A stretch of 64,000 bases of DNA from Marsupella aquatica (lineage: Eukaryota; Plantae; Marchantiophyta). The translations under genes and the position numbers were made by a program. Positions 9,300 through 50,849 of this stretch are shown here, piece by piece (positions within the stretch are counted from its first letter, which is position 1; each line of letters opens with the position of its first letter). Where the stretch lies: positions 10,687,832 to 10,751,831 of the forward strand of contig OZ316897.1 in the NCBI GenBank assembly GCA_973895155.1, in the 5' to 3' direction. Below the pieces are notes generated by a model, which was not told the DNA's origin, did no database searches, and saw nothing but the letters and a program-made list of their open reading frames with translations.

Positions 9300-12200
9300 G
9301 TGCTCATCGGTAATTGTGTCAGATCGCTTCATCTAACGCAAACTTTTTGCAGTGCAGAATAATGTTACTTGACCCACTTCACAATAAACTTCTACAATGA
9401 CGTTACTTTAAAGTCACTAAGCTCTGAAAACTCATCCACAGTAATCAAGTCTTTGGAAACTGTACGAGTTCCGATTCTGAAAAGGAGACATCGAAGAAAA
9501 GCACAGGTACAAATTTAGCCACCCGTGCGAGCAAGTAGTCTAGTTCCAACCGGATCTACACATTCCTGTCAAAATTACCAATCGCTTCCAAATCAAAACC
9601 ATGATGATAAATAGGTGGCCAGAAAACCCCACATCCAAGAGGGGGCATTCCTTCAGAAAAATGAATGCCAGCACAATCTACCCAAATTCTCACAGGCGAC
9701 TGTCCATCCCCATTTTGGTTGAAATCACAACTGAACACAAACTCAGGAAGCTAGATTATCAGACAACTCCCATTGAATGGTCAAAGTGGCACCCGTCAAA
9801 TCATGCCGATCCCTGTACTATCTCGTAGACTGCACCAGTACAAGTATCCCAACTCCAAAGAAGTTGGTGGAGCCAACATCAAGTCCTTGCTGACACCGAA
9901 TTCTTTGCATGACCATTAAATATCCCGCAGAAAGCGAGGCCAAAACCACACCAATTTCGTTTAATTTCCAACAAACCTATAAAAGAGAGGGAAAGCAGTC
10001 GAAGTGAAACCCGTATGGCCATATTGGACTTTTAGCACTCCTTGGATCGGAGCCACAACAGTCCCGGCAAACAATCTTCTGTCGTGACGTACGACAATCG
10101 AGACGCGAGTCTCACTTTCCCCCCGTTTTTGTTGAACAACATGATTTCTCGTCAGCGACAGTCACTCCAGAGGGAAAATCGGGGGGAAAATTCACCGACC
10201 GCAGGAGCAGGTCCACGTACAACTTTCGTGAGAAGTGTTCCAAAAGATCACAGAATAGCTGTCTCCTTCCTTAGTAAGAGACGTGCAGAATCGTGCCATA
10301 CTTGGTCTGTGCGCAACACGCTCTATCCCTGATCAAGCACTTCACAGGACCGACCGGCAAGAGGTTGGTCCCGAGGCCTTAACGATCGAGATAAGACAGT
10401 TCCTCATCAAAAAACCACGTTGAGTCCAGCTCAGCTCTCTCCGGTACCAGCCAGACTGAGACCGAGAGGTTCCTTGATGCAGCCAATTAACCAACTTGCC
10501 ACCTTACTCTATGAATCAGATATTCATTGGTGCAGTCGGGGGAGAAACTCCATCAACAGCTTCATGTGGGGAGTATGGTACCCACATAATCGTGCCATCA
10601 GATGCCGTGTGCATCCATCCAATCCACCCAATCACAGGACCACGAGAAGGCGGACAAATTCTCTCCTACATATTGAGCCTTCCATGGACTCCCGTAATCC
10701 GTCGCCGATGACTCCCCAGATCACCAATGTTCATCGGTGAGGACTTCTCCTCCGGCCACTTCGCACTACATAATGACCAGCAGGGACGAGGACGACGACC
10801 GAGCCCACGAGAAGGCAGAAAAATTATATCCTGCACATCGCGCCCAGCCATCGCGCCTCTCCTGGACGCGCCTAGTTCGTCAACTCGTCGAGGAGGACTC
10901 CTCTTTCGATCGGTATGGTGCACGCAAGAGCTTGCTGGGCCGCTGGGGAGATGTGAATTGCGCCGCTCGCCAATTATTCGACCTCCCTCGGATCCGCGAA
11001 CGAGACTTCTGAGTTCTGATCCTGTGCGCCAGCGCCACGCCGAGAGCCGTCGAATTTGCGGAGCTACGCCGCTCGCCCAGAATCCGATTGAAAGGCATTT
11101 AATTTATTAACTAGAACTGCCGAATCACTTTGGATTTTGGAACTCCGCCGGATCCGCGATCGAGGCTTGTTAGTTGTGATCCTGTGCGCCGGCGCCACGC
11201 CGAGAGAATAATGTCGAATATATGGAGCTAGAGGAGTAGTAGAGTGGGGCTGTGGGGGAGCTCGGAATGCGAGGCGATGGCGGCAGATCGTAGAGAGCCC
11301 GGGGTAGAGAGGGTGGGGACGGATTTCCGGCAGCATGATTCGCGGGGCGATGCCGGTGATCGTCCCGCCCGCCGGCGGTCGCAGAACCGCGGGCGCCTAC
11401 AGATAGCAGTAGCAGTGGGCAAGGAACATATTATCACGGAAACTTTACAAAATGTTGGGGGCCCATATTCGGAGCGATATATTTGATGGACTCCCAAAAC
11501 AAAAAGTATTTGATGGACCCCAAAACAACAAGGCTTACTTGATCGACCCCTTGCATGATACAGACCGTTGATAGACAGCATACCCGACATCTCATGGGGT
11601 CCATCAAGTACTACTTTTCATGTAGGGGTCCATCAACTATATTATCAAGGGGGCTTTATACTATGTTGGGGTCCATATTCCTTATTATCATATTAGGGGC
11701 TTTACAAGATATTTGGGGCCCATATTTGTTTACTTCTTCATAACCAGGATCATTGTCGGCAGTCGATGCTGCCCAGTACCATTTTCTCTTTTCAATGGCC
11801 GAGATCCCTCTCGACAACCAATGACCTATAGGGTTGCTCTAATTTTAAGGAACCTTCTCCAAATGGTAATAAAACGTTTTTGGATTATCGTATGTAGATA
11901 AATCAACAAAATAAGTTTGTATTTAAGGGTGGCTTTACAAGAACTTGGGGGTAACAATTCTCTTTTTTCTAAGTGAAAGATGCAATCCTAGCCATTCAGA
12001 TGTGTGAACTGGTCACACTTGACTTTACATGAACTTGGGGGCACGATGAACCAAAAGCATTTCCAAACCTAGTCATCTCTCAGTGGGCCCCTTGTGGGTC
12101 CTTTTTTTGTTGAGGTGTCCAAGCTTTTTTGTCAAAAACTTAGACCTCCTCTTGAGGTGGTCTAAAAACTTGGAGTAAACTGTTGCTTGTTTTCAGGGAA

Positions 12201-32200: not shown

Positions 32201-33272
32201 CAGGAGTCAGTTTATTTGCCTTGCGGTCCTGATCTAGTAGTTCAATGTGACTCGTGAATGCAGACTTTACCCACTAATTGAACACCAAAGGTTGGATCCC
32301 TGTATTCTTGTGGTAGTTTCCTCCTTAGAATTCATTTGGCTCAATGCCTTCTTTTTGCCATTTAAGTAAAAAGTATCTTAAATTTCTCCCATCCTCCTCT
32401 CTTAATGAAAACTTTAAAGCTTGGAATGCTTACACATGTCTTTCAAATAGCTATAGCCTAGCCTTGCCATATTACTTCAAGCACTAAGAAGATAGTCATG
32501 AATGTGTGCGCATCATTCCTTTGTTTTATGGCTATGTCTACTGTAAGAAATCAATTTTTGATATCAGTCAGTGCTTGGGGTTTTCCTGCCACAAAAGCTT
32601 ATAGAATTGGAATATTCTTTGATTGAAATGACCCTAATGTTCTTATAAGTCTCAAAATTGAATTTAAAAGACTCTATTGTTCTTTTGCAAAAACTCTTGT
32701 CTTCCCTTAGAACCAATAAAATGGGCATAAAAGGACCCTATCCTTTGTCGCACATAATGTTCCATTTTTGTGGAAGTGAAACCCCCAAGGGCTTGGCTAA
32801 GAAGAGGTTGAGATCTCATGGTTTAGACCTTTTGCCCACCCAATGTATGTTTTTGGTAAGCAAATGTATCCATCTATAAGGATTGAGTGGCAATAAGCCT
32901 AGGGTGTGTATCAGAGTTTTTGGCAAATTGAACCCCAAAGCCTCTAAGAAGAATTAATCCGTGGATCCCCATGTTATTTTAGAGACAGTTATCTAGAAAG
33001 CCTAGATGGACCTGCAAATCTTAAGAAAAAAAATTCAAAAATGGACAAGTCAATGTTTGACACTTGAAACAATTGTTAAACTTACCAAGACAACCATAAT
33101 TAACATCAATCACAAAACAAGCTCCAATGTGAATTACTGTTTAATGTGTGGGCAGCTTAATTGCCCACTTCAGCAAAATGGTGATCGATTTCCTTCACGT
33201 TATCGAAGGGATGCTGGATGCATTCAGGTTGCATCGAAAGTAATCACTTTTCAATTCCTACATGCAGATAGA

Positions 33273-33605
33273 TGTTAAGGATTGCTCTTAGTCTTGTGAC
33301 TCATAGGTTACGGCACTTAGGCTAACCACAGTTAGGATCTTAGCTGAGGTTAGGTTAGTCATGTGTGACCTTGTATATACCAGGGCTAGTGTAAGCCGCT
33401 GGTGTGTGATGCTTACTGATGGTAACGGAGCAACTTGAGGAAGTGGGAGAGCATGTGTGTTCGTTTACTCTTGAAGTAAAAGCTTGAGTGTTCATGTGGA
33501 CGTAGCCTTGGAGAAGAGGTGAACCACGTAGAGATTGTGTCGACTACGTGTGCATGGAATGAATCATGGTTGTATGGTCGTTGCGAATGACGTCTTAGTT
33601 CAACA
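33273..33605 (+). repeat. 5' LTR (333 bp)
   Basis: TGTTAAGG...TTCAACA preceded by ATAGA and followed by the PBS. Confidence 0.95.
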
Positions 33606-34287
33606 ATTGGTATCAGAGCAAGCCTGGGAGGTGACGTTGAGGTGATCAAAATTTTCGTGACGTGTTGGTGATGGTTTTTCCAGCGGTTAGAGTTGGTAGA
33701 TTTCACGAAGATCTATCGCATGGAACTTGAAGGTGTTGGGCTCAACGGATAGATCGGGGCAAGGACTTTCCGACGGTGCAAAGAAATCTCTGAACGGAGT
33801 TCGTGGTGCGGAGGAATTCACCCCTGGGCCCTCACTCTTAGTATATTAAGTGAACCCCCCTGAGAACAGACCCCCCCTTGTACCCCTTCTTAATATTTTT
33901 TTCTTCATTAAAATATCTCTTGTTAATATAAAAATATTAATTTTTACTATTAAATTTGACCCTTGAGTAACTTATAAAAGAGGTTTCCAAATAATTGAAA
34001 ACACCCTTGACTTTTTAAAAGTATGAATGCTATATAAACATGCAAACGATTCAGAATCATAAATATAGATTATGCATATTGATATTGTTTTGCATCAAAA
34101 ACTTGATCTTACACAGGCTACACCTTTTATATAGGTAAACAAAACTAGTACCAGATAATAATATATCAGGTTACTTATAGACATCATGCCGAAAGGTGAA
34201 CTAAACTAATACTACATCTAAGAAAGTGAATATGATGCTCTAGTACCCTAGAGGAACAATTGCATATACACTCATGCTAAATTCTTC

Positions 34288-34386
34288 CATCCTGAGCTAA
34301 CCAACCAGGTAATGCCTTCATCCTGAGCTAACCAACCAGGTAATGCCTTCATCCTGACCTATCCAAACCAGGTAATGCCTTCATCC
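34288..34386. repeat. 31-bp tandem repeat x3
   Basis: CATCCTGAGCTAACCAACCAGGTAATGCCTT at 34288, 34319 and 34350 (third copy degenerate). No spacers. Confidence 0.9.
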
Positions 34387-34712
34387 TTCACACCAAATGA
34401 TCAGCAAAGTTCTTGGCAATTTCTTCTGAACCTGATTTATCAAACCACACATTAATAATTGATTCTAGACAATACTCATAACACAAGGAAATCAATACTG
34501 AGAAATATGGGAGTAATACCATAACATCTTCTTTGACTGAAATTGTTACTTAGACATGGTGGATAATTTCCCTGTCAACTCTGTGATCCAACAAGGATTG
34601 AAATATCAGAGGCAGGATCAAAATCTCATTCAAAAGCCTTTCATAGCAATCAGAAACTTAAAAGATACATGCATAAACATTGAAAATTGCTTACCCTGTT
34701 ACATATATAAGA

Positions 34713-37700
34713 TTACTGAATTTTGTTTTTGGCAAAATTATCAAGAGAAACTGCATCATCTGGATGCAATTGAAAAACTCCTGGGCATAGTGGATCCACT
34801 GTCAAGTGGACTGTTGATATGACACAGTCCAAATCGATAAATTGTGGATCACACACATTGTAGGCAAATTTATGCCTACTAGTTCCAATTGGAGAAAACC
34901 ATTGGAACATAATTTTACATGCCTCCTCACCACCAGGCCTATCAAGCAAATCCAATTCACCTCTTGCTCTGTCCTGTTTCCCACCATATTTTTTGTGTAT
35001 ACTTTGTATTCTGCCTATCCACCACATATATTTTGGTGTTGTAGTTGAATACATTGCCACAGCTGCACCTCTTGGCCTCTTCGGATTTGGAACAAAATCA
35101 TCTGATCTGCTGCTTCCTCTCTTTCTTTGTCCTTTTCCTCTCAATGTTCGTGAAATTGCTTCTGAACTTCTAGTTTCATGAGCACTGTATGTATCATCCA
35201 AGAATAGTACTCCACAATCTGAACCTACTGTTACAAACATTGTTTGAACACCTGCCCTAACATTGGGTTTGTCCACTAAATTATTGAAGTAATGATTTTG
35301 CTTTATCCGAGTCAATCTGTCTTTGCTGAGGAGAGGGTTGTGGGTCAGTTGGCTGACCAAAGTACTTTTGTAAATGGACCGATTTTGGTATTCAACGGTT
35401 GGCTTCACATCTTGTGTTGCTGCTCCATATATCAAGTCAGAATGCATGATCCCCATGGTGGCCTCCATTTGAGCAGCAACTCCCTCTACATCTGGGTCTG
35501 CATATATCAAAAGTTGTTCTGTTGGGACAGGTAACTCAGAGTCCTCAGGCTCTACAACTTCTGTTGAAGTAGATGAGGATGCAGGCTCATGAGAGGTTGT
35601 TTCACCTTCCTCAGATTCCTCCACATCTGCCCCTCCATCTACTAATGTATCAACATTCACATCACACCAACTACCAAACTTGACCCCTTTAGCCTCCATC
35701 TTCCATGGGGAATTCCACCACACCTTGTCTTTGCAAGATGTGGAAGGGTTCATTTGTAATTCAGTGCATGCATTTTGGGCAAGCTGAAAACCTTCTTGCA
35801 GTGCAATCACTATTTCTCCATTGGTTTCAATCCCTATATAGTCCATTTGATCTGCTACAGTAGGAATTCCTGCTGGGATTGTAGTGAGCTTCATCCAAAT
35901 GTTTTCATGTTTCTTGTGACTCTTCCCTACACCCATCATTCCTTCTGCCAGATCCATTGCAGCCAATCGATTTCAATTGGTAGCACATTCTACTAACTCA
36001 GCCAAGTCATAACTTCGTTCATGACCATTCATACCTCCTACAGCAGAAAAAAACTGCTCACAAGCATCTGACCCAGTCAAATGCAATGGCACTGGAAGAT
36101 GTCGAAAATTGTCTCTGAATTGGATTACCAACAGGACCACAAAATGAACTGACATCTGAATGTCAAGGAAACTTTGCATGGGAATGCAATTTTTTGTGAA
36201 ACTGATTGGTTGTGTATTCCCTCCCACTGAATGGTTTCCATGAAAGCACCATTGACGCCATAGTCTAAAGAAGAACCCCACCTTCCCACAATGGACAATC
36301 CTCTGTCGCAAATTCAGACTAGTATTCAGAAATATGTCAATGTAGTCTGCACATATCCTAGTGTAAACTTCTGTCCCAAGAGTCTGTTCAACTCTTGCAT
36401 CACCACGTTGGCGAAGCATCCGTAAGGAGGACTGTACTTTGCGACTACAGAGTCGTTGTGCACTAGCCCAATTTTGTCTGTCTTTCCTTGACTTGTCCTC
36501 TTCATTCAAGCCATGATCACTGTTCAGGTACACTTTGTAACAGGATATGATGTGACTCAGGTTTGCCATTTCCGCTCCTAATTTCAAAATACGAGAAGTA
36601 GAATCCAATGGGTTCACTAACTTCTTCCCATTATGAATAAAATCTTGATCATGCAATCCATATGCATGGATCAATGGTCCAGTAGTGGTCATAGAGTGGG
36701 TCAATTTCCAAGCTTCCCACCTTAGGTCCTGCCTTGGCCCTGGTATTCCACTTCCAGAGTAGTCTTCCAACATAAGCTTTCTCCTTCGTGCATCCCCATC
36801 GCTTGCATGACCCAATAATGGCCCCACACACTCTAGGCAATGAGTTGTCCACAGTGAGGCTAGGTTGTTCCATTGTCGCCTGACCCATGGAGCATCAAAC
36901 TTGTTACAGGTGCCCATCCCTAGTATGCACAATCGAGGGAATCCAGCAACAAGGGCATTTACTATCAAACACCTTGCCTGGTGAGCTATAACATAATTGT
37001 CAAATGCATCTGCAATGTTGTTGAAGCCAACTTCTCCTTCCCCCACTATGATCTCCAAGCCAACACTGCACTCATGATCCTTTTTTGTCCCACAAAATCC
37101 AAGAAGAGTATCATGTTTTGGCAGCCATCTGCAACCAATAGCAGGTGGTTTCTTCATTAGTTCTTGTTCAATATTTTTGTGTAGCACAAAAATACATACT
37201 GAAGGAAAAGAATGACTAGAGCAAGAGGAGGCAGTGAATAGTCACCTCACAGTCCTCTTCACACAAGTCTCGTCCTCTGCCAAAAAGCATGGAATGGGTC
37301 CATGTATATTTAATCGAGCCTTCAATTTGGAAAATACTTCCGCAATAAACTGAAATTGCTCTACATGAATTCCAGCACGAAACACTACCATGCCTCTCTT
37401 ATCCCTTTGAAGGGTGTTGAGAGTGGGACCAATTCCATTGGTTGCAAGACAATCAACTACACGTCTTCCGCCATGTAAAAACAGTGTTTGGCAAAAAAGT
37501 TTTGTTCCAGGCCTAAAACGATATCCTGTCTTCTCCCTATTGATGTTCTGTGCTATGTCTGATAACATATCCCACAGAGCTCCTCTCCCACCAAAGGCAC
37601 CTCGTTTGTGTGCCAATATTATTGAATGACAGAATTTCAATACAGTTGCTTTGTTTGGTTCCTCATAGTGAAGACACACTTCACTAATGCTGGGGACCAG

Positions 37701-39386
37701 AGCCTTTGCCATGAGTAGCTTGTGACTCAAGATTCTCTGTAACTTTCGTTCTCTCAAAATTTGGTTCCTATAACTTTTAGCTTGGTATTGGACCTCTGGA
37801 ATAGTCAAATAGTCTAAGCGCCTACCTTTACCAGCAGTTCTACAACCTCTTTTTTCAAGAGCTTTGTACTCCCTGTAAACTCTGAGTCGAAAGTCCTGCT
37901 CTGTTTTTATGCTAAAACATTGCGTACAGGATAAGTCTATAAACCCACCACCAAGTTCTGAAATTCGTCTACACTCTCTGTGTCTAAATAAACCAGAGAT
38001 CACACAGTTTTCCTGAGTCGTCAAACACCACACCTCTGCCCTCACTGTGGGCTCCGCATACCAGTTCCCATCTAATTTAAGCTGATCATTTAAAATTTCC
38101 TTGATAGGCCTGGTATCTGAACCATATTTCACCACATCACGCCAGAGACCCCAGCATAGCAAAGAGAGATTGTCAAGAGTACCTTTGTCTTTTGAACTAG
38201 AACTGGAAGCTCCTCCAGTTGAGGGGCGAGTTAAGAACCCAACTATTTTCTGTTGTTTCACATCCCTTCCATCTGGTGCACGAGGTCTTCCAGGCCTTCC
38301 ACTGTGCACTGGGTTACCCCTAGTAGGCTTTTGACTTCTCATGACATAGTTAAGATGACTTAAGCCTCCCACATGGGCTTCCAAATTTGTTTCCAAATTG
38401 CGTTGTTTTGGAATCAATGTCAAGTTTTCAGCACAAAACTCACAATGAAGTTTGAACTTCATCAACTCTAGGGGTTCTTTGTCCACATCACCTATTACTG
38501 TAAAGGTATCACACCCAACAAGCCCACCAGCATTTTGTGCTGAGTTTATCTTCTCCACAATCTTGACATGTTGATCAAGTATGGCTCTATCATTCAGAGT
38601 ACAAGCCTCAGCCCTCTGAGAAATCTCTCTGTGATCCACTTTCTCACCCCTATTAGATGCTACACGTCGAGCATGCTTTTTTGATGGCAAATGTTTCACT
38701 CTGAAGTTTGTAAACACATTATTGACCATAGTTTTATCCACACCCTTGACACTGCTACATGCAACTGCTTGATATCTGAAGTCACATTCACAACACTCAA
38801 TATGCCCACGAGGCACACCATCCTTGTCCCAGGTTCTGACTTTCCATTTGTGGTCCACACACTTAATAAAAGTCATCCACTCTATCAACTTCGTCACAGA
38901 AGTCTCCCATGCTATTTTGAGGTCATGAGACATTAATTCAGACTCTAGGCTGACTTGTGATTCAACTTCCTGGGATGGGGTACTTGCAGGTTGGGCCTCC
39001 TGAGATGGAGCTCCACCTACATGCTGGTTAGAGGGTTCATCTATTGTGGGAGTACCACAAGATGTGCTACCAGGTCCATTGGATGCATGGCTACTTCCAA
39101 GGACTTGTTGTGACCCATTCTGCACATCTCCTTGGACAAAATTGTTGGGGTATTTTGGGATAATGACAATCTTCCCACCACAATCCTCTACCAGATTATA
39201 CGTCTCAAATTTCTCCAACATTCTACAAGCAAGGTTGATGTCCATGAAATGGAACTCGAAGTCAAAACCTGACTCCAAGTTCTTTCTAGCATCATAAAAG
39301 GTTTCACCTATCTTGTAGCTATATGATGTCAGGGGTTTCCGTTCCCCTGACTCAGAGTCTGCTTGAAATACAGTGGCAGGCGGCAT
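34713..39386 (-). pseudogene. P-element/THAP9-like DDE transposase, 2 coding exons, ~1518 codons, one in-frame stop
   Basis: ORF 39386-37246 splices via a 117-bp GT..CTAA..TTGCAG intron (37245-37129) into 37128-34713, joining ..KRTVR-WLPKHD.. in frame. The 404-aa and 417-aa ORFs share a frame, separated by one TGA (35973-35975). Motifs in P-transposase order: LAEDET, HASDGD, DFIHNGKK (DxxH), SDACEQFFS. Confidence 0.8.
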
Positions 39387-41049
39387 CCTCTATGTCCAAC
39401 GTTTAATTCCCTAACCAATTGACATATGCTAGGGGCATAGGCCTGCAAACATAGCACAAGACAAGAGTGAAGCACCACAATCAAAATGGACACAATCATA
39501 ACACTTCAACCAATTATGGGTTACTTTGTAACGACCCATTCAATGACATTGCTCAACATGGGGATTTGGGAAGTTTTGGCCTCCTACAAGTAGCCTAAGG
39601 AAGCCCATATGTCAAGACCGCATCCACCAGACCAATTCCACAAGGGCCTTGCCCCATCCCGGCCATTTCTCATGGTAATTGGCTTGTCTAAGATCCATTG
39701 CAGCTTTCTCCTTTCGGGTGGGAAGGGACGTACCCTTTGCATGCAAGGACTCTGGTTTCAGCGTAAGCACAAGAGAGTATGAGATCTGCACATGGCCATT
39801 TAAGCTTGTCCTGAATTAGCTTGTCCCAACATATTAGCTTGTCCCAGTCTGTGCTTGGTCCATGTGCAGTCGGGGCCAGGCCCATCACTCCAATCCCTCT
39901 CCTCGACATGTGCAATGGGCTGATCAAAATTTATTTACTCACAGACTCGCTCAGAGAGGCTCGACCATTCATGAATAGCAACATTCCATGGACCACCCAA
40001 ATCCTATCTGGCAAGGCTCTAAGCAATCTTCCCCCCCCCCTCCCAGGCTACCTGCACCTGCTTCGCCTCCAAAGAGCGCTAGATTGTCAGGGATGAAATC
40101 TGACAATCTCCACTGAGGGCATTACTTCCCCAATGGTCTCCTTGGATTTGATGGGACCTGCAAACGGTCCTACTTCTACAACAGAAAGACAAAGCCTAAT
40201 TCACAAAACATAAAGAAATGCTTACCTGAGCAAACACACAAAGCCCTGTTTGTAAGCGGATTCATACAAGACAACAAGCATGAATCGACTGTACAAGAGA
40301 CAACGTACAATCAGGAATGCACGGCAAAATGAAAGTAGGGCATCTGACTGCAAGAAGAGGCACCACTGATTCTTTACTTACTTGTGTATTTGCATTGGCT
40401 GCTTGAACGGGTCAGGGACGGAAACTAGATCCACATTGGAAGTCGACAACAACAAGCCTGCTCCAGACAAACAACAATGAATGAATGGAGATGCAAAAAG
40501 CATTAGCCACAGTCCTGGACTTCTTGGCAGTTGACAAAACAGAGATAACAAGCAATTAGAAAACAAACCTGTAATATAGTATAGAAGTGCCGAGAATAAC
40601 TTGACCAGGGGTGGCATTCATTGATAGTATTCTAATCTTGATTAAACTTCAAGACCTGTACAAATCCACCAACAAAGAGAATCTTACAAAATATCAACAG
40701 GATACCATAGTTTAGCATCTATTCTACGATAATTTTAGTCCTGCTACCTGCCAAAAATACCGGCCAACTACTGTACGTTGGCGTCAAGTTGTGGATACCA
40801 AGGTAGAGCAGCTGGAGACTTGGAGAAAATTGATCTCATAAACCAGCGAAAGAGATAGTCTGCTAGACTGGGCAAAGTTGGACTGAGCCGGGGACAAGTC
40901 CAAACCGGGTTGAAATCACTTGGAGCCCTCTACAGTCTCCGAATAAAAGAACACTCCCCGGATGATTGTGTGTAGGAGGCAGAGAGAAGGCGAAGAGAAT
41001 ATAGGAAGCGGTGCTCGATGAGATCTACAAAGCTGAAGGAAATCGAGCT

Positions 41050-41818
41050 ATGGCTGCTGCGTCCCTGATCTGCTGCTCCAGCAGTTTGCTTCGCCACTCG
41101 CCCGCCCTTTCATCACCTTCTTTCCGTGCGAGAGCGACGTCCTCGTCCCCCTCAGCGCTCGCCTCTTTGAGCTCGGCTTCATTTTGTGGGGTGCACAACT
41201 ACAACTTGTCGTCAAATACTCTCGCGCGGTGGCCATCTTTGGAATTTTGGTGAGAAAAGTCTTGGCAATGAGGGTACTAAGCATATTATACTAATTCCTC
41301 CCTCGTTGCTGGGATTGTCGGAGAGGAACTGCACGCCGCTAGAGCTAGGGACTGTTCCTCTGTCTGAGGAGGAAGCCACGGCATTGCTTCGCAAGGTCTC
41401 TACGCTGAGCCTCACTTTATATAATAGTGTTTCTAGCTCAATTCTCCCAAAATGATTGGCCATTTGCTTCTGGGTTTACCGTTCAGTGTGACTGGTTGCA
41501 GAGAAGCAATTGAAAGAACAATTGCAAAAATATGTGACCTTCTGACGACAGTGTTAATTCAGGTATTATTTCAGCACAAAATAATTTCATGTGAAATCAA
41601 GTCTGTTACGATGACCCAGACAGGAATTGTAGGGTGGAGATTGGCAAAGGCCGACAATGGACTCAAAATCTGGACTGAATGGAAGCTGAAAGATTTTGGA
41701 GCAGGAATTTCGCTTTTCGATCGGATTGGAGCTGTCGCTGAAGTTGAAGGGCATTACCCAGAACTTCATCTTCAAGGGTTAAACACAGCTAGAGCAGAGC
41801 TCTTTACCCAGTCCATAG
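41050..41818 (+). pseudogene. RAF2: Captured fragment of Rubisco accumulation factor 2 (plastid PCD-like protein)
   Basis: Ser/Ala-rich transit peptide from ATG 41050. After a frameshift/deletion near 41240: NFGEKSLGNEGTKHIILIP..LSEEEATALLRK|intron 41396-41619|TGIVGWRL..WKLKDFGAGISLFDRIGAVAEVEGHYPELHL..ARAELFTQSIG|gt. The expected last exon (GLSxNDFIxAAKID-like) was not found. Confidence 0.82.
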
Positions 41819-44800
41819 GTACGGTTGGACCCTGAACTGATACGTCTGGACTGCTCTATGTATGTTAATTTAATGAATCTCGCAAGATTCATGTCATGTG
41901 GATGCGGCTCGCCTCAAGCATCGCCCACTATGGCGATCATGGCACGCATGTTGTAGACTTCAACTACACTGATGGCGTTTCGAGAATAAACAATTTTACC
42001 CGAAATTTGACAGACAACAAGAACTTAAAGAACATGCCTGGGAATGGTGGAAACTTCACCTTCCATAATGAGACAAAAGCAGAGGTTGTGGAAGTCAATT
42101 TGGAACCTGCAAGGAACACGTAACAGTCACTGCAATCCCAAACGTAGTTGGAGCGATATGTTGACCAAAAGAAGGCAATGCAACGGAGAAGATAGCGAAG
42201 ACTGAGGCTTTAAGACAATGGTAGACTCAGAGGCACAAAAGGCATAGAATCAATGCAGTGGTACACAACTAACAAAGTCGCGTAGTATGCAATGCGCAAT
42301 CATCAGATCCAAGTTGAGGAAATGCAGAAGGGTTTACAGTGTGATACATTGAGGAATATAGTGGCTTACATCTGTTTTTGTCAAACACGCCGACCGTCCT
42401 TCAATGAGAAACTGTCTTCTAGCTAATGTAACTCCGACTAGATCCTGTCATGTACGCAGTGACAGTTAGTTACTAGATATTATTGGTCAATATTCTAACT
42501 GAGTAGAGATAACTGAGTGTTGTCACAATGAAATTGTCCATACTTGCTGACCTCTTTTGATGCCACACACTCTTCCCTGATTCTCGATCTACCTCTCTCC
42601 CCTACGTTTAGCTCTTCTCCTCTGTGGCCCGTAGCCTTTGACAAACTCCTGTCGGGACTCCTGCCTGCCTTCTTGCCTAAGGCAAATCCTTCAATGAATG
42701 AAGGAATTAATAAATCATGCAAGGAATTAATGAATGAAGGAATTTCCAAATAGCCACAGAACGCAACTCTGTGACAAGGTGAGGAGGAGTGACGTACGGT
42801 GGTGGGGACGAACACGATGGCCGAGCAGTGCTTGACGGACTGGTTCCCAAAAACGAGGCTATCCTTGATCACATACAAGAGGTTCTTCCTGTGCCTCGTG
42901 CCAAAACTGTGCTTCTCACTAATGGGATTGTTTACTGTCATCCTCGACAAACATGTTCGCCAGCAGTAGCAAAGCGGAAGCGCGCCATCACAAACTTTGG
43001 TCTGGTCTCAATGAAATAGAACATTCCCAAGCAAAGCAAATGAAGAGCTACTTCAGTGCTCTTTACGTTACTAAATAATAGGAAAGCTATGGAAATGACG
43101 TTGGGCTCAGAAAATAGATAGCCTGATCGAAACAAGGAAAACATTGACGCAGACCACACATTCTATCTCTTTCGCCACAAAACATTCTACGAGTACACTG
43201 TAAGCATTGTTGCAGACAAGTCAAGCCCAACTCCTCGACACAAACATCACAAATGGAAGAACTGTTTGTTGAAAAGTCAATAGCAACTCACTTGTTAACA
43301 TGCAATTATCGGGGCAGTTCCGGGGGCAGTTCAAATGAATGATTGGACTCAACTGCTGCCATTTTGCGTATTGAGGGCTCCTTCCCCTCGTCCTTCCCTC
43401 AATATTCTTTACAATGTTTGGGTCCTCGTCATCTTACAGCATTACTCCTTGCGCACGCCACGCCATGCCAAGCCATCGATTGATCGCTGTCCCGGGTCGC
43501 TGTCCAAATGCAGGTTACTTCGTTGCTGGCTTCATTGCAGAATGGATTGCTTGCAATCTGCAATAAAAAAGCTCATCTTCAGAAGCATTTCGCTGCTTTT
43601 TGGCAAAACACTTACATTGACAAAAAGAGATCATGCAAAGCAATACCTTCCAAGCTCGAGCATCTTCCTCTGCAGGTTTTGCTTCCTGCACTTTGGCTTT
43701 CACCGAGTCCACCAACCAAAAGCCCTGTGTGAGAACATGTGCAAAAACTGTCAGCTACACAAGACTGAAATAAAAACCCGCCTTAAAACCTGTATCAAAA
43801 GAGGTTACATCAGATCACGGCATGTACATGTTAACGCAACCGCGCAAAGTAGCAAGCCCGGGGTAGCAAGAGGGTGGCATGCACTCACTTTGCCAAGCGA
43901 GGAGCCGAAAGAATAAGTTCACTGTGTGCAAGAGCAGAGAATACACACGGGACGGACCCTGCGTGTAGCCTAACAAACAAACATAGCTATGGCGGGTCTG
44001 AAATCCAACGCCGCATGCAGCCCAAACCCCGGCCCAAACAAGCAAATGATCGCTATGGCCAGTCTAAAATCCAACGACCTAAACTGCAGAGAAGCAGGGG
44101 GAATGCAAGGGAGGGTCACGCAAACCCTGTTGTGTGAACCCCAATGTGGCCAGCCCCCGATACCTCCCTCACCCCAATGATAAGGGAGTACAAAACCCCC
44201 ACCCCACACACACAAACACACCTGGCCGTTTGATTGAACCCATTTCAAAAGTAATCTTGTTTGTTTATGTGCTATGGAGGGGGTATTGATCCATGGTCCC
44301 CATCAATCCCCCATCAATCCCTAAACCCCAACCCCCGCCCCAACCAAGTTGGACCCAAAGATCCCGACCCAACATTTACTCAACTCCCGACTCAACTCCT
44401 AAAAATGCGAGTAAACATGTCTACTAAAACCCATTTGTCCCACCATAAGGGGGCACACAAACTTGTCTTAGGAGAACAAATAATTAAATGTGTGATTTAC
44501 TATATGGACAGGTGTGCCAATGAAGTCATGACATGTGTACCAACCATATAGTGACGCATGTCCTTGACATTTTGGGTACCCTTGCATAAGAGTAATGTGA
44601 CATGTATTTGATAAGAGCCTTATTACTAATATTGTGTCAAATGTATATATAGGGATGTTGCCGACTTTAAAAATTATTATAAAAATTAGTTTGCATTACA
44701 TTAAAAATACCCTTGCGTCGTTCGCACGTCCTCCCTGTATTAGTAACGCTAAGGGCCCAGGGGTTGGACGTCACAAAGAGAAACCCGATTCAGATGGGAA

Positions 44801-44874
44801 CAAGCTCCATATAGGGAGCAGCACAGCAATAGGGAGCAGCACAGCAATAGCACATGGAGAACGTTGGGAGGACA

Positions 44875-47800
44875 ATGATGGCATCCAAGTTTGGAGGTGT
44901 CAAGTTTGAGGTGGAAAAATATGATGGGCGCACAGATTATTTGCTATGGGAGAAGCAGGTTAAGGGAATTCTTCGTGCTATGGGCCTAGATCATCTGCTA
45001 TCGACTCGGGAGGAGTCTAGTAGTGAGGAGGAGATCCCGTTGAGGAAATGGAGGCAAGAGCAAGTGATTGCTGTGAATGCGGTTATGCTGTATCTGAAGC
45101 CACATATCATTAAGAAGCTGGACGACTACGAGGATTGTGTATCCTTATTCAAGGCCCTCAGAGAGAAGTACTACCGAGAGGATGCCTCAGATCGGTTGTA
45201 CAAGAAGTCTCTTTGATGAGCTTCAGGCTAAAAGAAGGAGGCAAGCTTCGAGATCACTTGGATGAATTCGACAGCCTAGCTGTAGATTTGTCAAATCTTG
45301 GCAAGGGAGTGGAAGATGAAGATAAGGCATTGCTTCTTCTCAGTTCCTTACCCCCATCGTATCAAGGTTTGAAGCAGGTTCTCTTGTATAGAGATCTCAA
45401 ATGGCCTCATTCACAATTGGAGGACCCAAAAGGAACGTCACACTCAAAAGTGACCATAGTTTATTATGCTTTTATTAGGATATCATTTTTAGGGTGTAAT
45501 GAGATGATATAGAAAATTTGATGTACTATACTTAATAAACATCTTATAGGTTGGTAACATTCATTAAACTATCTAGCATTTGAGACTTTGAAGCTTTCCT
45601 TATATGTCCTTCAAAGATTGATAAAAGGACTTGTCACGCAACGGGTCACATCATTTCAGGACTCAAAATGACTCTAAAAAATGCATTTTAGATAATGAAA
45701 TTTTACCAAAGCATGCATACTAATAGCATAATCTTATATTTCAAAACTTAAATAGTGACACACAGTAAACCTTTACATACAGGACAAAAATAATCAGTAA
45801 TTTTGGCTTATTTAGGGCCATCAATAATAGGATCCCTTAAAACAGTTGAAACTTTGATGTATCTACACGGTGAGGTAGGTTACACCATGCAAAATAGTCT
45901 TGTGAAAAAATTAGACTTAAATGTCTTGAGATAAAATCATGATGAACCTTTTTCCATGTTACGAAAGTCATTTTTCACTAAAAAAGCATGTTTTTGAGTC
46001 CTGAAAGTGGTTCCTGCAAGGTACACCCAATTGTGAATGAGGCCAAAACCATTTCATATGATGAGGTGGTAAGCTCTTTGTTGTCAAATGATGCACAGAA
46101 GAAACTGGGTCATGCCCAGACACCATCTTCATCTGGCAGTGCATTGAATGTGAACCGCGGGAGGACTCAACAGCGGATGACTGGTGAAAACAGGTCCTTT
46201 TCACAAATGTACCCCTCACGGAATAGAGGCAAGGAGAAGGCTCGGTCTAAGTCTAGATCCAGGTCTAGAGAGAAATCTCTAGAAAGGAAACCAATTATAT
46301 GCTAGAAATGTAACAAGCCTGGCCACATGAAACGAGACTGTCGAGTCAAGCAAACTCATCAACCATCAGCGAACGCAGCCACTGATGTTGATATGATTGA
46401 TTTGCTTGATGATGAAATCTTGTGAAGTCCAGATGTTGCCCTTTGCATTTCATCCAGTAACAACGGTGATGAATGGATTTTAGATTGTGCTTGTACCTAT
46501 CATATTTGTTGTATGAAAGAGTTTTTTACTTCTTACTCAGTATCAACCGGTTCCGTGTTGATGGGGAATGATCATCCTTGTCAAATTATTGGAATTGAAT
46601 CCGTGAAAATTCGGATGTTTGATGGAGCTGTGTGAACAGTGAGTAATGTCAGACACATACCTGACATGAAAAAGAACTTGATTTCTCTTGAAATGCTGGA
46701 AGCAAATGGATGTCGGTGGAGTTCTGCTGATGGTATTCTTCAAGTGTCAACCGGAGGCAAGGTTGTCATGAAGGGTAAGCCGCACAAGAATCTATATTTG
46801 TTGGAGGGCAACATGATTTGTGAAGAAGCCAATGTAACTAGATCTCAAGGCGAGATGACTCAGTTATGGCACTGCAGATTGGGACACATGAGTGAAAAGG
46901 GTTTGGCGGTACTTCGTAAGAAAGGACTTCTTTCTAATTTGGAATCTACTAAGCTAAATTTTTGTGAACACTGTGTGCTTGGGAAGCAGCACAGGAGAAC
47001 CTTTGGTGTTGGAACTCACAATACCAAAGCTATACTTGAGTATGTACATAGTGATGTGTGGGGTCCAGCCCCAACTCCCTCACTTTCTGGAAAATTGTAC
47101 TATGTCACGTTCATTGATGATTACTCACGGTATGTATGGATCACATTTCTACACGCCAAGTCTAAAGTTTTTGGCACTTTTAAGAAATGGAAAGCCCAAA
47201 TTGAGAATTAGACTGGATCCAAGGTGAGATATCTACGATCAGATAACGGCGGGGAGTACAGTTCAAGTGAATTTAAACTATATTGTGCAGAGCAAGGGAT
47301 TACTCGTCATCTCACGACAGTTTATACTCCTCAACAGAATGGTGTTTGTGAGCGGCTAAACCGAACACTATTGGAGCGATCGAGGAGTATGTTGAGCCAA
47401 TCAGGTTTACCGCATGAATTTTGGGCTGAAGCTATAAATATGGCAGCTTATTTGGTAAATCTTTCTCCTTCAAGTGTAATCAATTTCAAGACGCCGTTTA
47501 AAATGAGGTATGGACGGCACGCAAACTATTAGGTTTTGAGAGTCTTTGGAAGTGATGCATATGCTCTCACACCTAAGCAGAATCGATCTAAACTAGATTC
47601 TACTTCCAAGAAGTGTCTTTTTCTTGGTTATCAACCAGGTGTGAAAGGTTACAGGCTATGGGATCCAGAAGCTTGTACGTTGCTTGTCAGTAGAGATGTA
47701 TCCTTTAATGAATCCAGATCATCAAAGAAGGGGGAGAATGCTCAGGTTTCCCGTACTGACAAAGGTAAATCTCCTATCCTGGACCATGTTGTGAGAGAGA

Positions 47801-49652
47801 TTGGTCATGACAGTTTTTATGACATAAATGAAAGAGGTGCTCCGAGAATGGAGCTGGTTCTGGTATTGGAACAAGAGGAGCAAGTTGTTGTTGGAATACC
47901 TCAAATTCAACCAACAGAACAAGATCAACCAGAATCATCAGCTAGAAAATCAAGACGTACTACTCGAGTTCCTACAAGGTATGGACAATGGACAGATTCA
48001 TCAAGGTTAGATGATGTTGACATTGCACCTGAAGATGATGACAGAGCACTGATCTTGGAAGAAAGAGAACCTTCTTCTTATCATGAGGCGTGCATTTCAG
48101 ACGAGAAAGATGAATGGAATGCAGCAATGCAGAGGGAGTTGCAATCTTTAAGTGACAACAAAACATAGGAGCTGGTGCAACTGCCAAGTGATCAACAAGT
48201 GGTGGATAGCAAGTGGATTTACAAGCTGAAAGACAGCTCTTCAGATGGAGGAGACAAGATATACAAGGCAAGGCTTGTTGCCAAGGGATTCACTCAAGAG
48301 AAGGGAGTGGATTACAATGAGGTCTTCTCTCTAGTTGCCAAGTATTCCACGATACGAATTTTGTGTCAACTTGTTGTGTTTTTTGATCTGGTGTTAGATC
48401 AAATGGATGTTGTTACTGCTTTTCTCTATGGCACCTTGGAAGAACAAATTTTTATGAGGCAACCACTGGGCTTTGTGAAGAAGGGCCAAGAGAGTTTAGT
48501 TTGCAGGTTGCTTAAGTCCTTGTATGGATTGAAGCAAGCTCCTCGACAGTGGAACAAGCAGTTTGATGATTTCATGTTTGCACAAGGATTCACTAGGATG
48601 GTGTATGACCCTTGTGTGTATACAAAATCAGTCAAGAATGGTGTGTTTGGTTTGCTCATTCTGGTGCTCTATGTGGATGACATGTTGATTGCGGCTAAGG
48701 ATCAAACTAAGGTTAACAAACTCAAAGCAAAATTGAGTTCTGAATTCCGAATGAAGGATCTTGGGAAAGCCAAGAGGATCTTAGGTATGAAAATTACGAG
48801 GAACTTTGAAACTGGACAATTGTGGCTGAATCAAGGCAAGTATGCTGAAAAGGTACTTGCAAGATTCAACATGGAAAATTGTAAGCCAGTAAGAATTCCT
48901 TTGGCTCCACATTTCAAGTTATCATCGGCTTTCTGCCCCACGGATCCAGTGGAGAGAGGCTTGATGACTAAGGTTCCTTATGAGAAGGCAGTGGGCAGTC
49001 TAATGTATTTGATGACATGTACCAGGCCTGATCTAGCCCTAGCAATGGGCAAAGTGAGTAGATTCATGTCAAATCCAGGGAAGGTACATGGGAGGCTGTG
49101 AAATGGATTCTCAGGTATCTTAAGGGCACAATAGACTATGGTCTGTTGTTTGATAGTAGATCAAACAAAACCAAATCTTTGGTTGGCTATGTAGATTCTG
49201 ACTACGGAGGCTGTCTGGAAACAAGGAGGTCAACGACTGGGTATGTGTTTACTCTTGGAAGAGGATGCATAAGTTGGAGATCTACCTTGCAGAAGTGTGT
49301 ATCTCAGTCTACTATAGAAGCAGAATATGTTACAGTAGCAGAAGCAGCAAAGGAAGCAATTTGGTTGGATAAGCTGGTCACTGAGATGGGATTGGAGCAT
49401 GGAAAAATGACTCTTCATTGTGACAGCCAAAGTGCGCTTCACCTAGCTATTAACCAGGTTATGGATAGCAGGGTGAAACACATTGACATCAGGTACCATT
49501 TTATTAGGCAAGCAGTGTCTGATAAAATGTTTGAGCTAATCAAGATTGATGGAAAGCTCAACCCGGCTGATGCTTTTACCAAAGTGATTCCTTTGGAGAG
49601 TTACTCAAGACACCATGCTACTTTGCAAGTTTTGCATTTGCAGCACAAGTAG
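44875..49652 (+). pseudogene. Copia gag-pol polyprotein, disrupted by stops, frameshifts and a MITE
   Basis: Gag (LLLLSSLPPSY, C-stop-KCNKPGHMKRDC), protease (WILDCACTYH), integrase (LWHCRLGHMS, VHSDVWGP, LRSDNGGEY, PQQNGVCER), RT (YKARLVAKGF, LYGLKQAPR, YVDDML), RNase H ([20 protein letters not shown]). Confidence 0.95.
45402..46045. mobile_element. 644-bp MITE inserted in Copia gag
   Basis: Perfect 19-bp TIR TGGCCTCATTCACAATTGG / CCAATTGTGAATGAGGCCA with an AT-rich non-coding interior. Removing it plus 2 A restores gag YRDLK-TISYDEV. Confidence 0.9.
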
Positions 49653-49856: not shown

Positions 49857-50189
49857 TGTTAAGGATTGCTCTTAGTCTTGTGACTCATAGGTTACGGCAC
49901 TTAGGCTAACCATAATTAGGATCTTAGCTGAGGTTAGGTTAGTCGTGTGTGACCTTGTATATACCAGGGCTAGTGTAAGCCGCTGGTGTGTGATGCTTAC
50001 TGATGGTAACGGAGCAACTTGAGGAAGTGGGAGAGCATGTGTGTTCGTTTACTCTTGAAGTAAAAGCTTAAGTGTTCATGTGGACGTAGCCTTGGAGAAG
50101 AGGTGAACCACGTAGAGATTGTGTTGACTACGTGTGCATGGAATGAATCATGGTTGTATGGTCGTTGCGAATGACGTCTTAGTTCAACA
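49857..50189 (+). repeat. 3' LTR (333 bp)
   Basis: Follows the PPT; followed by TSD ATAGA at 50190-50194. Confidence 0.95.
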
Positions 50190-50849
50190 ATAGACAAAGA
50201 GAGAGAAATCATCGGTGTCATCAAATCACTAACCTTGCATAATTGTTTAAGACAAAAACCTTCATGGAAACAAATTTCCAATTGTGGAATTCAGAATGGA
50301 TAGAAAGTTAGAAAAATTTAGAAATTCATGACCACTTTAGTACTTGATAAAATCTTCCAATGTCACATTAGAAAGCTAGAGAACATTGGAAACTTATAAT
50401 CTCCTCAAAACTCAACTAAATCTATCAATGTTAAGTTCATTAAACAACTAAAGAAATTCTAAAATTCATAATCTCTTTAGTACTCGATAAAATCTATCAA
50501 TTTTAGGTTTATTCTCATGGAAGGGGTCAACATTTCAAGGGTTGTACAACAAAATTTATATTCACATTAGAGATTACAAAATCACGGGTAAAATCTATTT
50601 TTCAAATTATTTACTCAATTCTTATCGAACGGTGACAATTCTGAGCTCATCACGACCGCCTCTTCAAGATCTTTCCAACCCCATATTATACGTGAGTTTT
50701 CATTATGATTTGACTCAACAATGTCAAATCCAAAATTATTGTCAGGAAAATTTTATGTTTTGAATGAAATCAAAATGGAAATAAAACCGTTATTGGGAGC
50801 AGTTTACCTCAATCTTTTTATCTTTTGATTTGCAAGTCAATTTTTTTAC

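Follow-up and report, generated by a model that had tools for sequence, protein, structure and literature searches.

A 64,000-bp stretch of the genome of the liverwort Marsupella aquatica (GenBank assembly GCA_973895155.1, contig OZ316897.1, positions 10,687,832 to 10,751,831 of the forward strand; hereafter the window, to which coordinates refer unless stated otherwise) harbours, in the leader of a Copia retrotransposon, a segment of 10,945 bp (33820-44764) that is bounded by terminal inverted repeats (TIRs) and carries a transposase gene together with 5.4 kb of other DNA. We assign the element to the P superfamily, in which it represents a divergent lineage from land plants. Taken as a whole, the data are probably best accounted for by a cut-and-paste DNA transposon of the P superfamily, from a liverwort and land-plant lineage, that inserted into a young Copia element, lost or failed to form its target-site duplication (TSD) in this particular copy, and carries captured host-gene cargo.

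With respect to the boundaries of the element, the 13-mer ACCCCTGGGCCCT occurs exactly twice in the window, as the left TIR at 33820-33832 (plus strand; beyond the 3′ end of the transposase gene) and as its perfect reverse complement, the right TIR, at 44752-44764 (minus strand), and beyond these 13 bp the two arms match imperfectly at 19 of 24 positions. In shuffled sequence, the mean number of 13-bp TIR matches expected by chance is 0.03. No further copy of the TIR was found inside the segment, even with up to three mismatches allowed, which argues against a composite of two elements. The insert lies between the primer-binding site (PBS; TGGTATCAGAGC, 33608-33619) and the gag gene of the host Copia, the ATG of which is located at 44854 and is followed by gag, integrase and reverse transcriptase domains. 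The two long terminal repeats (LTRs) of the Copia element (33273-33605 and 49857-50189, both on the plus strand) differ at 5 of their 333 positions (98.5% identity) and are flanked by the TSD ATAGA at 33268-33272 and 50190-50194; the matching LTRs and this 5-bp TSD on either side of the insert argue against an assembly chimera. The original prediction, made from the sequence alone, of a TIR-bounded segment of this size in a Copia leader was thus confirmed both by the shuffled controls and by the mapping of the Copia LTRs, TSD and PBS. Despite the high LTR identity, the gag-pol region (44854-49652) is broken into at least six open reading frames (ORFs), and the host Copia was already defective when it inserted, not long ago. 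A self-BLAST of the window revealed no second copy of the element or of the Copia leader, and the right-end 20-mer had no match in a metagenome scan. The left-end 18-mer was found in 12 metagenome contigs, 10 of them with a G+C content of 49-73%, but these were rejected as chance matches as they showed no further similarity and no transposase.

The transposase is encoded by a single gene on the minus strand, in a frame running from 39386 to 34713 that specifies about 1,500 aa and is interrupted by a single GT-AG intron and a single premature TGA. Exon 1 (37246-39386; 714 codons), across which homologues can be aligned, contains two zinc-finger-like CxxC...H...H motifs and ends with LAEDET, the putative first catalytic motif. 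It is followed by an in-frame GT-AG intron of 117 nt (37129-37245), the excision of which restores the family spacing AEDET-x7-W-x4-DTL. The first part of exon 2 (35976-37128) codes for the catalytic core with the motifs GHASDGD (second Asp), HDQDxIHNGKK, DRQNW and GSDACEQFFS (Glu), the catalytic residues being predicted. As the TGA at 35973-35975 falls on an aligned residue column, and as the spacing around it is identical residue for residue to that in the intact homologue P0066, it represents a premature stop rather than intronic sequence, truncating the product by its C-terminal 417 codons, which together with a TAA stop make up the remaining frame (34713-35972). The last 258 of these codons (34716-35489) are conserved in relatives, including the motifs LSKDRLTRIK and WW.GR.Q; their AlphaFold2 (AF2) model is weak (pLDDT 58, with 70-84 in the beta part), and its top matches in structural comparisons with VIA are BAH domains (Z 6-7), which is a hint, and no more, of a chromatin reader or chromatin-targeting module. 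In the window copy this BAH-like domain lies behind the premature stop. A gap of intron size (~120 nt) is also found at the AEDET/W position in the Riccia fluitans loci L012 to L014 (about 9580-9700) and is absent from the relatives L015 and L017 in the ENA assembly ERZ25073694, which suggests that the Riccia copies may share the intron.

Homologues of exon 2 (109 in all) were found in Riccia, in Adiantum and in many metagenome and Logan contigs, and none of the 109 contains a Pfam domain, while a profile built from the family retrieves 4,982 clusters at 50% identity (E up to 0.001). One of the homologues, P0061, appeared to represent ten separate loci but was rejected as such, being one locus seen in many samples. 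The three pieces of the window transposase likewise have no match in Pfam (E up to 0.01) and no THAP domain was found in exon 1, where by eye the CxxC...H...H motifs stand at the N-terminus in the place of a THAP domain. Six full-length relatives contain no P-element domain of Pfam, only assorted additional domains, and the long relatives contain no THAP domain; PF21787 (TNP-like RNase H N) can faintly be recognised (E about 0.03) in 3 of 24 family members. Sequence searches of the PDB with the single pieces as well as with the family profile gave no true match, the profile missing even 6P5A, the Drosophila P-element transposase.

The fold is, nevertheless, that of a P transposase, as judged from an AF2 model of P0066 (pLDDT 86), which was computed from a 53-row alignment that included the window pieces. 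P0066 is 33% identical to window exon 2 over the aligned stretch and covers all three motifs. When its model was compared with 48,161 chains by VIA-align, the best match was 6P5A_A (Z 23.9, root-mean-square deviation 4.0, 392 of 442 residues), the next family being RAG1 with a Z of 10.8, and Foldseek also placed 6P5A at the top (E 1e-9), followed by Transib and RAG1. The neighbours of window exon 2 in the ESM Atlas are clusters with TNP-like_RNaseH_N, GBD and RNaseH_C domains (PF21787, PF21788 and PF21789; scores 0.90-0.92), i.e., the domains of THAP9 and P transposase. In the P0066 model the P-type arrangement of an RNase-H-like DDE domain interrupted by a large insertion (GTP-binding) domain is present. 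Modelling of the homologue and the Atlas neighbourhood hence agree with the proposal that the gene codes for a P-like transposase, and the modelled enzyme has the P-transposase fold, with no detectable THAP domain, and is invisible to curated sequence models.

In order to delimit complete relatives, the loci around homologues were scanned for inverted repeats (9 bp or longer) with an 8-bp direct repeat on their outer sides. A copy in Riccia fluitans (L013; CM092411.1, 6686-19929, 13,244 bp) has the TIR CTTGGGGAAGTCACTCA and the TSD ACTGGAGG, with 8 of 8 positions identical, and two copies in ERZ25073694 have the common TIR CTCGGGGGGTGCAGT, namely L015 (7240-16179, 8,940 bp; TSD AGTAGCTT, 8 of 8) and L017 (8278-17983, 9,706 bp; TSD with 7 of 8). 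All three contain the homologous transposase gene, and their TIRs measure 15-17 bp; no clear TIR could be recognised at the loci L001 and L002. The 8-bp TSDs of these relatives indicate that the integration chemistry of the family is ordinary.

For the window copy itself, no direct repeat of at least 5 bp flanks the segment at any shift of its boundaries within 8 nt, and a duplication of 2-11 bp was likewise not found over this range of shifts. The letters flanking the insert are GGAGGAATTC on the left and TGGACGTCAC on the right side, and the 8-mers at the exact ends, AGGAATTC and TGGACGTC, match at 5 of 8 positions, compared to 0-4 matching positions at other lengths. In line with the original prediction a flanking TSD is therefore absent, but the further claim that this absence points to a different integration chemistry, and hence to a new superfamily, is not supported: three complete relatives with a homologous transposase show 8-bp TSDs, and the left flank differs from what normally precedes the site in insert-free Copia copies. 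The missing TSD is accordingly best read as a defect of the window copy.

The evidence on the flanks comes from Logan contigs of four public runs (X1 to X4, from the coded organisms A and B) that were aligned to 39300-45299. Contigs of insert-free Copia copies lose their match at 44766 in X3 (9 contigs) and X4 (13 contigs) and at 44763 in X1 (9 contigs), which confirms the right boundary of the insert with an accuracy of 1 nt. Before this break, the insert-free copies have a conserved sequence that ends with TTCTTCCACCGAGTC, then GGACGTCAC. The 20-nt upstream consensus of these copies is absent from the window, as is, from the left flank and the entire window alike, a conserved upstream sequence of 33 nt obtained by merging the consensus letters of the loose ends, and an alignment of the upstream sequence with the left flank of the window copy was no better than alignments of shuffled controls. 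According to a related Copia contig (L030), the left leader of the window copy is genuine Copia leader up to about 33754; the upstream sequence of the insert-free copies matches, in reversed orientation, a second leader module of L030 (5582-5600; 17 of 18 positions) that is absent from the window copy. The simplest reading of these comparisons is that leader DNA and the left copy of the TSD may have been lost or rearranged beside the left end. A gag search aimed at the empty site yielded two related Copia contigs, the leaders of which are too diverged or rearranged for its reconstruction. Leaders in this abundant Copia family are generally built from modules, most copies having the reverse complement of the L030 module just upstream of 44766, and other Copia subfamilies diverge at 44829 instead (within the leader 44765-44853; runs X1, X3 and X4).

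Among the alternatives to a copy-specific loss, a mode of integration in which the lineage with ACCCC... termini cuts its target without a stagger, and hence leaves no TSD in any instance, is very improbable. Such a mode of integration would accommodate the lack of a TSD at any offset as well as the difference between the window TIR and the CTYGGGG termini of the three relatives. However, the catalytic core belongs to the same family as that of the relatives with 8-bp TSDs and has the P-transposase fold, the flanks match best at exactly 8 bp, and the abnormal left flank is explained by an accident of this copy. TSD length, moreover, normally follows the transposase family. The agreement at 5 of 8 positions at the family-typical length, for which a binomial estimate gives a chance of about 0.03, could instead indicate that a normal 8-bp TSD, NGGACGTC, was made and that its left copy later mutated to AGGAATTC. 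This is likewise very improbable: an insertion that is younger than a Copia element with 1.5% LTR divergence would by no means be expected to have accumulated three substitutions within 8 bp, none of the three changes is a CpG transition, and the bases further to the left mismatch what precedes the site in other copies, too. Finally, it is scarcely conceivable that no bounded element exists at all, the TIR pair having arisen by chance or the region being a chimera of the assembly. One copy has been seen, and left-end 18-mers occur by chance in soil bacterial contigs, but the pair brackets a transposase gene and far exceeds the expectation from the shuffled sequence, the right end lies within 1 nt of the break in the insert-free Copia copies, the LTRs and the TSD of the host match across the insert, and the junction between gene and cargo, together with the cargo, was recovered in independent runs with 99.9% identity.

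Some further features of the termini can be listed here. The heptamer ACCCTTG is found at 33959, 34003, 44578 and 44709, in all cases on the plus strand and twice within 190 bp of each end; these copies, within about 400 bp of sequence, account for 4 of its 15 occurrences in the window, and the heptamer may serve as a subterminal binding site, although its copies, strangely, are direct repeats and not inverted ones. A tandem repeat with 3.2 copies of a 31-bp unit (34288-34387) is located 470 bp inside the left end. In Riccia, L014 (12925-12955) and the same place in L013 contain an internal palindrome of the TIR core, GGAAGTCACTC ... GAGTGACTTCC, which is possibly an internal transposase-binding hairpin.

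The extra DNA of the window element (39387-44751; 5.4 kb) extends from the transposase ATG to the right TIR and is composed, in mosaic fashion, of cargo with low depth (about 40224-44458) and of repeated pieces of higher depth (about 39500-39900 and 44458-44764). Within it resides a block of about 1 kb (40887-41888, plus strand) that corresponds to the 5′ part of a gene resembling those for pterin-4a-carbinolamine dehydratase (PCD/RAF2), oriented head-to-head with the transposase gene. On the plus strand, the fragment comprises a start codon (ATG, 41050) followed by a Ser-rich stretch that resembles a transit peptide, a change of frame near 41215-41243, coding sequence at 41243-41395, a GT-AG intron at 41396-41619, and an exon at 41620-41818, after which the next intron begins and the block ends. 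Pfam identifies it as Pterin_4a (E 1.1e-9), and all of its neighbours in the Atlas are Pterin_4a as well; for the 66-aa exon, searches against the PDB gave weak matches to DCoH/PCD proteins only (E 0.1-0.3), and for the 127-aa ORF a word-index search gave no match. Apart from Pterin_4a, nothing was found in Pfam for ten ORFs of the cargo. In all four runs there is also a paralogous form that lacks the PCD block, with a joint from 40886 to 41889 and 23 other letters in between, the last 14 of which resemble 41873-41886. Since the intron has been kept and a block-less paralogous form exists, the PCD block is a discrete acquisition of genomic and not of cDNA origin, as in Pack-type elements. The expectation of a transposase accompanied by more than 5 kb of other DNA with host-gene exons was thus borne out by the gene at 34713-39386 and the 5.4 kb with their dehydratase-like exons. 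Of the notion of a "Pack-P" element, the part concerning a host-gene fragment with an intron between TIRs is real, whereas its mobility in the manner of Pack-MULEs is hypothetical.

With respect to copy number, the cargo (40224 to about 44458) shows a uniformly low summed k-mer depth (about 380 in X1, 73 in X2, 470 in X3 and 182 in X4). The summed depth reaches 20-33 times the cargo depth in the bin 44500-44699, about 5-7 times in the bin 44300-44499, and 7-22 times at 39500-39900 in all four runs, the Copia flank having 60-490 times the cargo depth; at 43100-43900 the depth is raised mainly in X3. The right subterminal region (44458-44764) is common to many copies, with loose contig ends at 44452, 44458 and 44479 and a joint from 44271 to 44458, and the loose ends at 44452-44479 imply that most copies diverge from the window copy just inside this region. 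The cargo contigs of the four runs are near-identical to the window, e.g., with 4 differences in one contig of 2,797 nt, and the cargo depth is 3.6-15 times that of the block-less paralogous form, on a scale that is not calibrated to single-copy depth. A low-depth variant of PCD exon 1 is present in run X2. At 39468, 41139, 41618, 41703, 44558, 44567 and 44663, and in having 9 additional nucleotides, TCCTCGTCC, after 41139, the four runs agree with each other and differ from the window, so that either the window stems from another individual or the contigs represent the majority form of a multi-copy cargo.

Variable internal DNA is also found in the relatives, where one end of the element is 0.5-0.85 kb away from the start of the gene and a non-conserved stretch of 3.9-8 kb comes after the gene, on its 3′ side and not on its 5′ side as in the window. 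L015 and L017 have only the gene and about 200 bp per end in common, and their differing internal DNA suggests that variable internal DNA is a habit of the family. Part of the extra DNA of L017 recurs outside elements in L015 and L016. In Riccia fluitans, L013 (6686-19929) and L014 (7235-19798) occur on the same chromosome at a distance of 1.9 Mb; on the 3′ side of the gene they have about 8 kb of extra DNA in common, at about 82% identity, which indicates that the extra DNA travels with the element there.

It could be argued, in turn, that most of the 5.4 kb in the window copy consists of nested repeats, or of host DNA trapped between the ends in the manner of a composite or macro-transposon, and that the PCD block alone was captured. 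The raised depth at 39500-39900 in four runs and at 43100-43900 mainly in X3, the small amount of sequence shared by L015 and L017 together with the recurrence of L017 DNA outside elements, and the lack of Pfam domains in the remaining ORFs would all fit this view. Nonetheless, there is no internal copy of the TIR, TIR or TSD signatures of nested elements were not seen, and most of 40224-44458 has the flat, low depth of unique or low-copy DNA, so that we regard this explanation as somewhat unlikely, if worth keeping in mind. More speculative, and in our opinion doubtful, is a scenario in which the cargo-bearing form is multi-copy and has been moving recently, with about 4-15 near-identical copies per genome in the two coded organisms. 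It would then spread a RAF2-type fragment as the P-superfamily counterpart of the Pack-MULEs, and the TSD-less junction would reflect a repair-mediated route of insertion.

Several points nevertheless weigh against a P-superfamily element with copy-specific TSD loss and captured cargo. On the part of the enzyme, the P-element models of Pfam stay below threshold and a THAP domain is not apparent from the sequence, and the fold was modelled on the homologue P0066 and not on the split protein of the window itself. On the part of the junctions, the 8-bp TSD is known only from relatives that are 46-52% identical in the core and have different TIRs, and a second copy with the same TIR, i.e., of the exact lineage, was not retrieved. 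The insert-free Copia contigs, which were aligned over 39300-45299 only, a range outside which the left junction lies, may represent a subfamily with a differently built leader, and a deletion beside the left end of the insert is something we infer. The copy number of the cargo, lastly, is ambiguous (1 or 4-15), as the contig depths lack a single-copy reference.

If the element did originate as a P-superfamily insertion with a TSD lost in this copy, its history might be pictured as follows. Of the three parts of the protein, the N-terminal one would be a zinc-finger region, the second an RNase-H-like DDE core that contains the P-type insertion domain, and the third a BAH-like C-terminus that maybe reads chromatin; the protein would bind the ends, excise the element and rejoin it into the target with an 8-bp stagger. 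The window copy would have inserted into the leader of the young Copia with an exact right junction, and at the left junction the 8-bp duplication would either have disappeared or not have arisen in the first place. A deletion or rearrangement of the adjacent Copia leader, recombination of two copies close to each other, or insertion of an excised element by way of repair would be the likely causes. Given the premature stop, the copy would need transposase in trans. About 4-5 kb of low-copy DNA, including the ~1-kb PCD/RAF2 fragment, would be cargo acquired inside the element.

The P superfamily is characterised by a TSD of 7-8 bp, by GTP as a cofactor, and by a long staggered cleavage (17 nt) of the donor. 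Like the Drosophila P element, THAP9 and the P superfamily with Galileo and 1360, the window element has an RNase-H-like DDE core that contains a large insertion domain and of which 392 residues could be aligned to 6P5A, as well as TIRs, one long transposase gene with an intron and, in its relatives, an 8-bp TSD. Unlike the P element, with which it shares an identity of only 12-13%, below Pfam detection, it has zinc-finger-like motifs in lieu of a detectable THAP domain, a longer protein (about 1,500 aa compared to 751), a conserved BAH-like C-terminal domain, termini that do not begin with CA, and a land plant as host; unlike both the P element and its own relatives, the window copy has no TSD. 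With Pack-MULEs, Pack-CACTA elements and Helitron captures it has in common a truncated host-gene fragment (5′ exons and intron) between TIRs, as well as a mosaic cargo and a variant form that lacks the block. In contrast to the Pack-MULEs, which are non-autonomous, have no transposase gene and belong to Mutator, it keeps a full-length frame with one premature stop and is P-like in its superfamily. The relatives from Riccia fluitans and ERZ25073694 agree with it in transposase family, in size (9-13 kb) and in having TIRs and variable extra DNA, and they differ in their TIR, in the position of the extra DNA, and in the PCD/RAF2 fragment and missing TSD that set the window copy apart.

In the accessible text of a 2022 review, six TIR superfamilies are listed for land plants, and P elements appear there only as an example from Drosophila (PMC9033089). 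A description of P-type transposons in land plants was not found in those parts of the literature that were available to us.

The family is undetected by standard profiles, yet thousands of clusters emerge when a profile of the family itself is used. For annotation, this means that short TIRs in combination with an 8-bp TSD can serve to delimit these elements of 9-13 kb, the internal DNA of which differs between copies. The absence of a TSD, in turn, need not mean a new integration chemistry. The window copy also shows P-type elements nesting in a young retrotransposon and carrying a host-gene fragment with introns.

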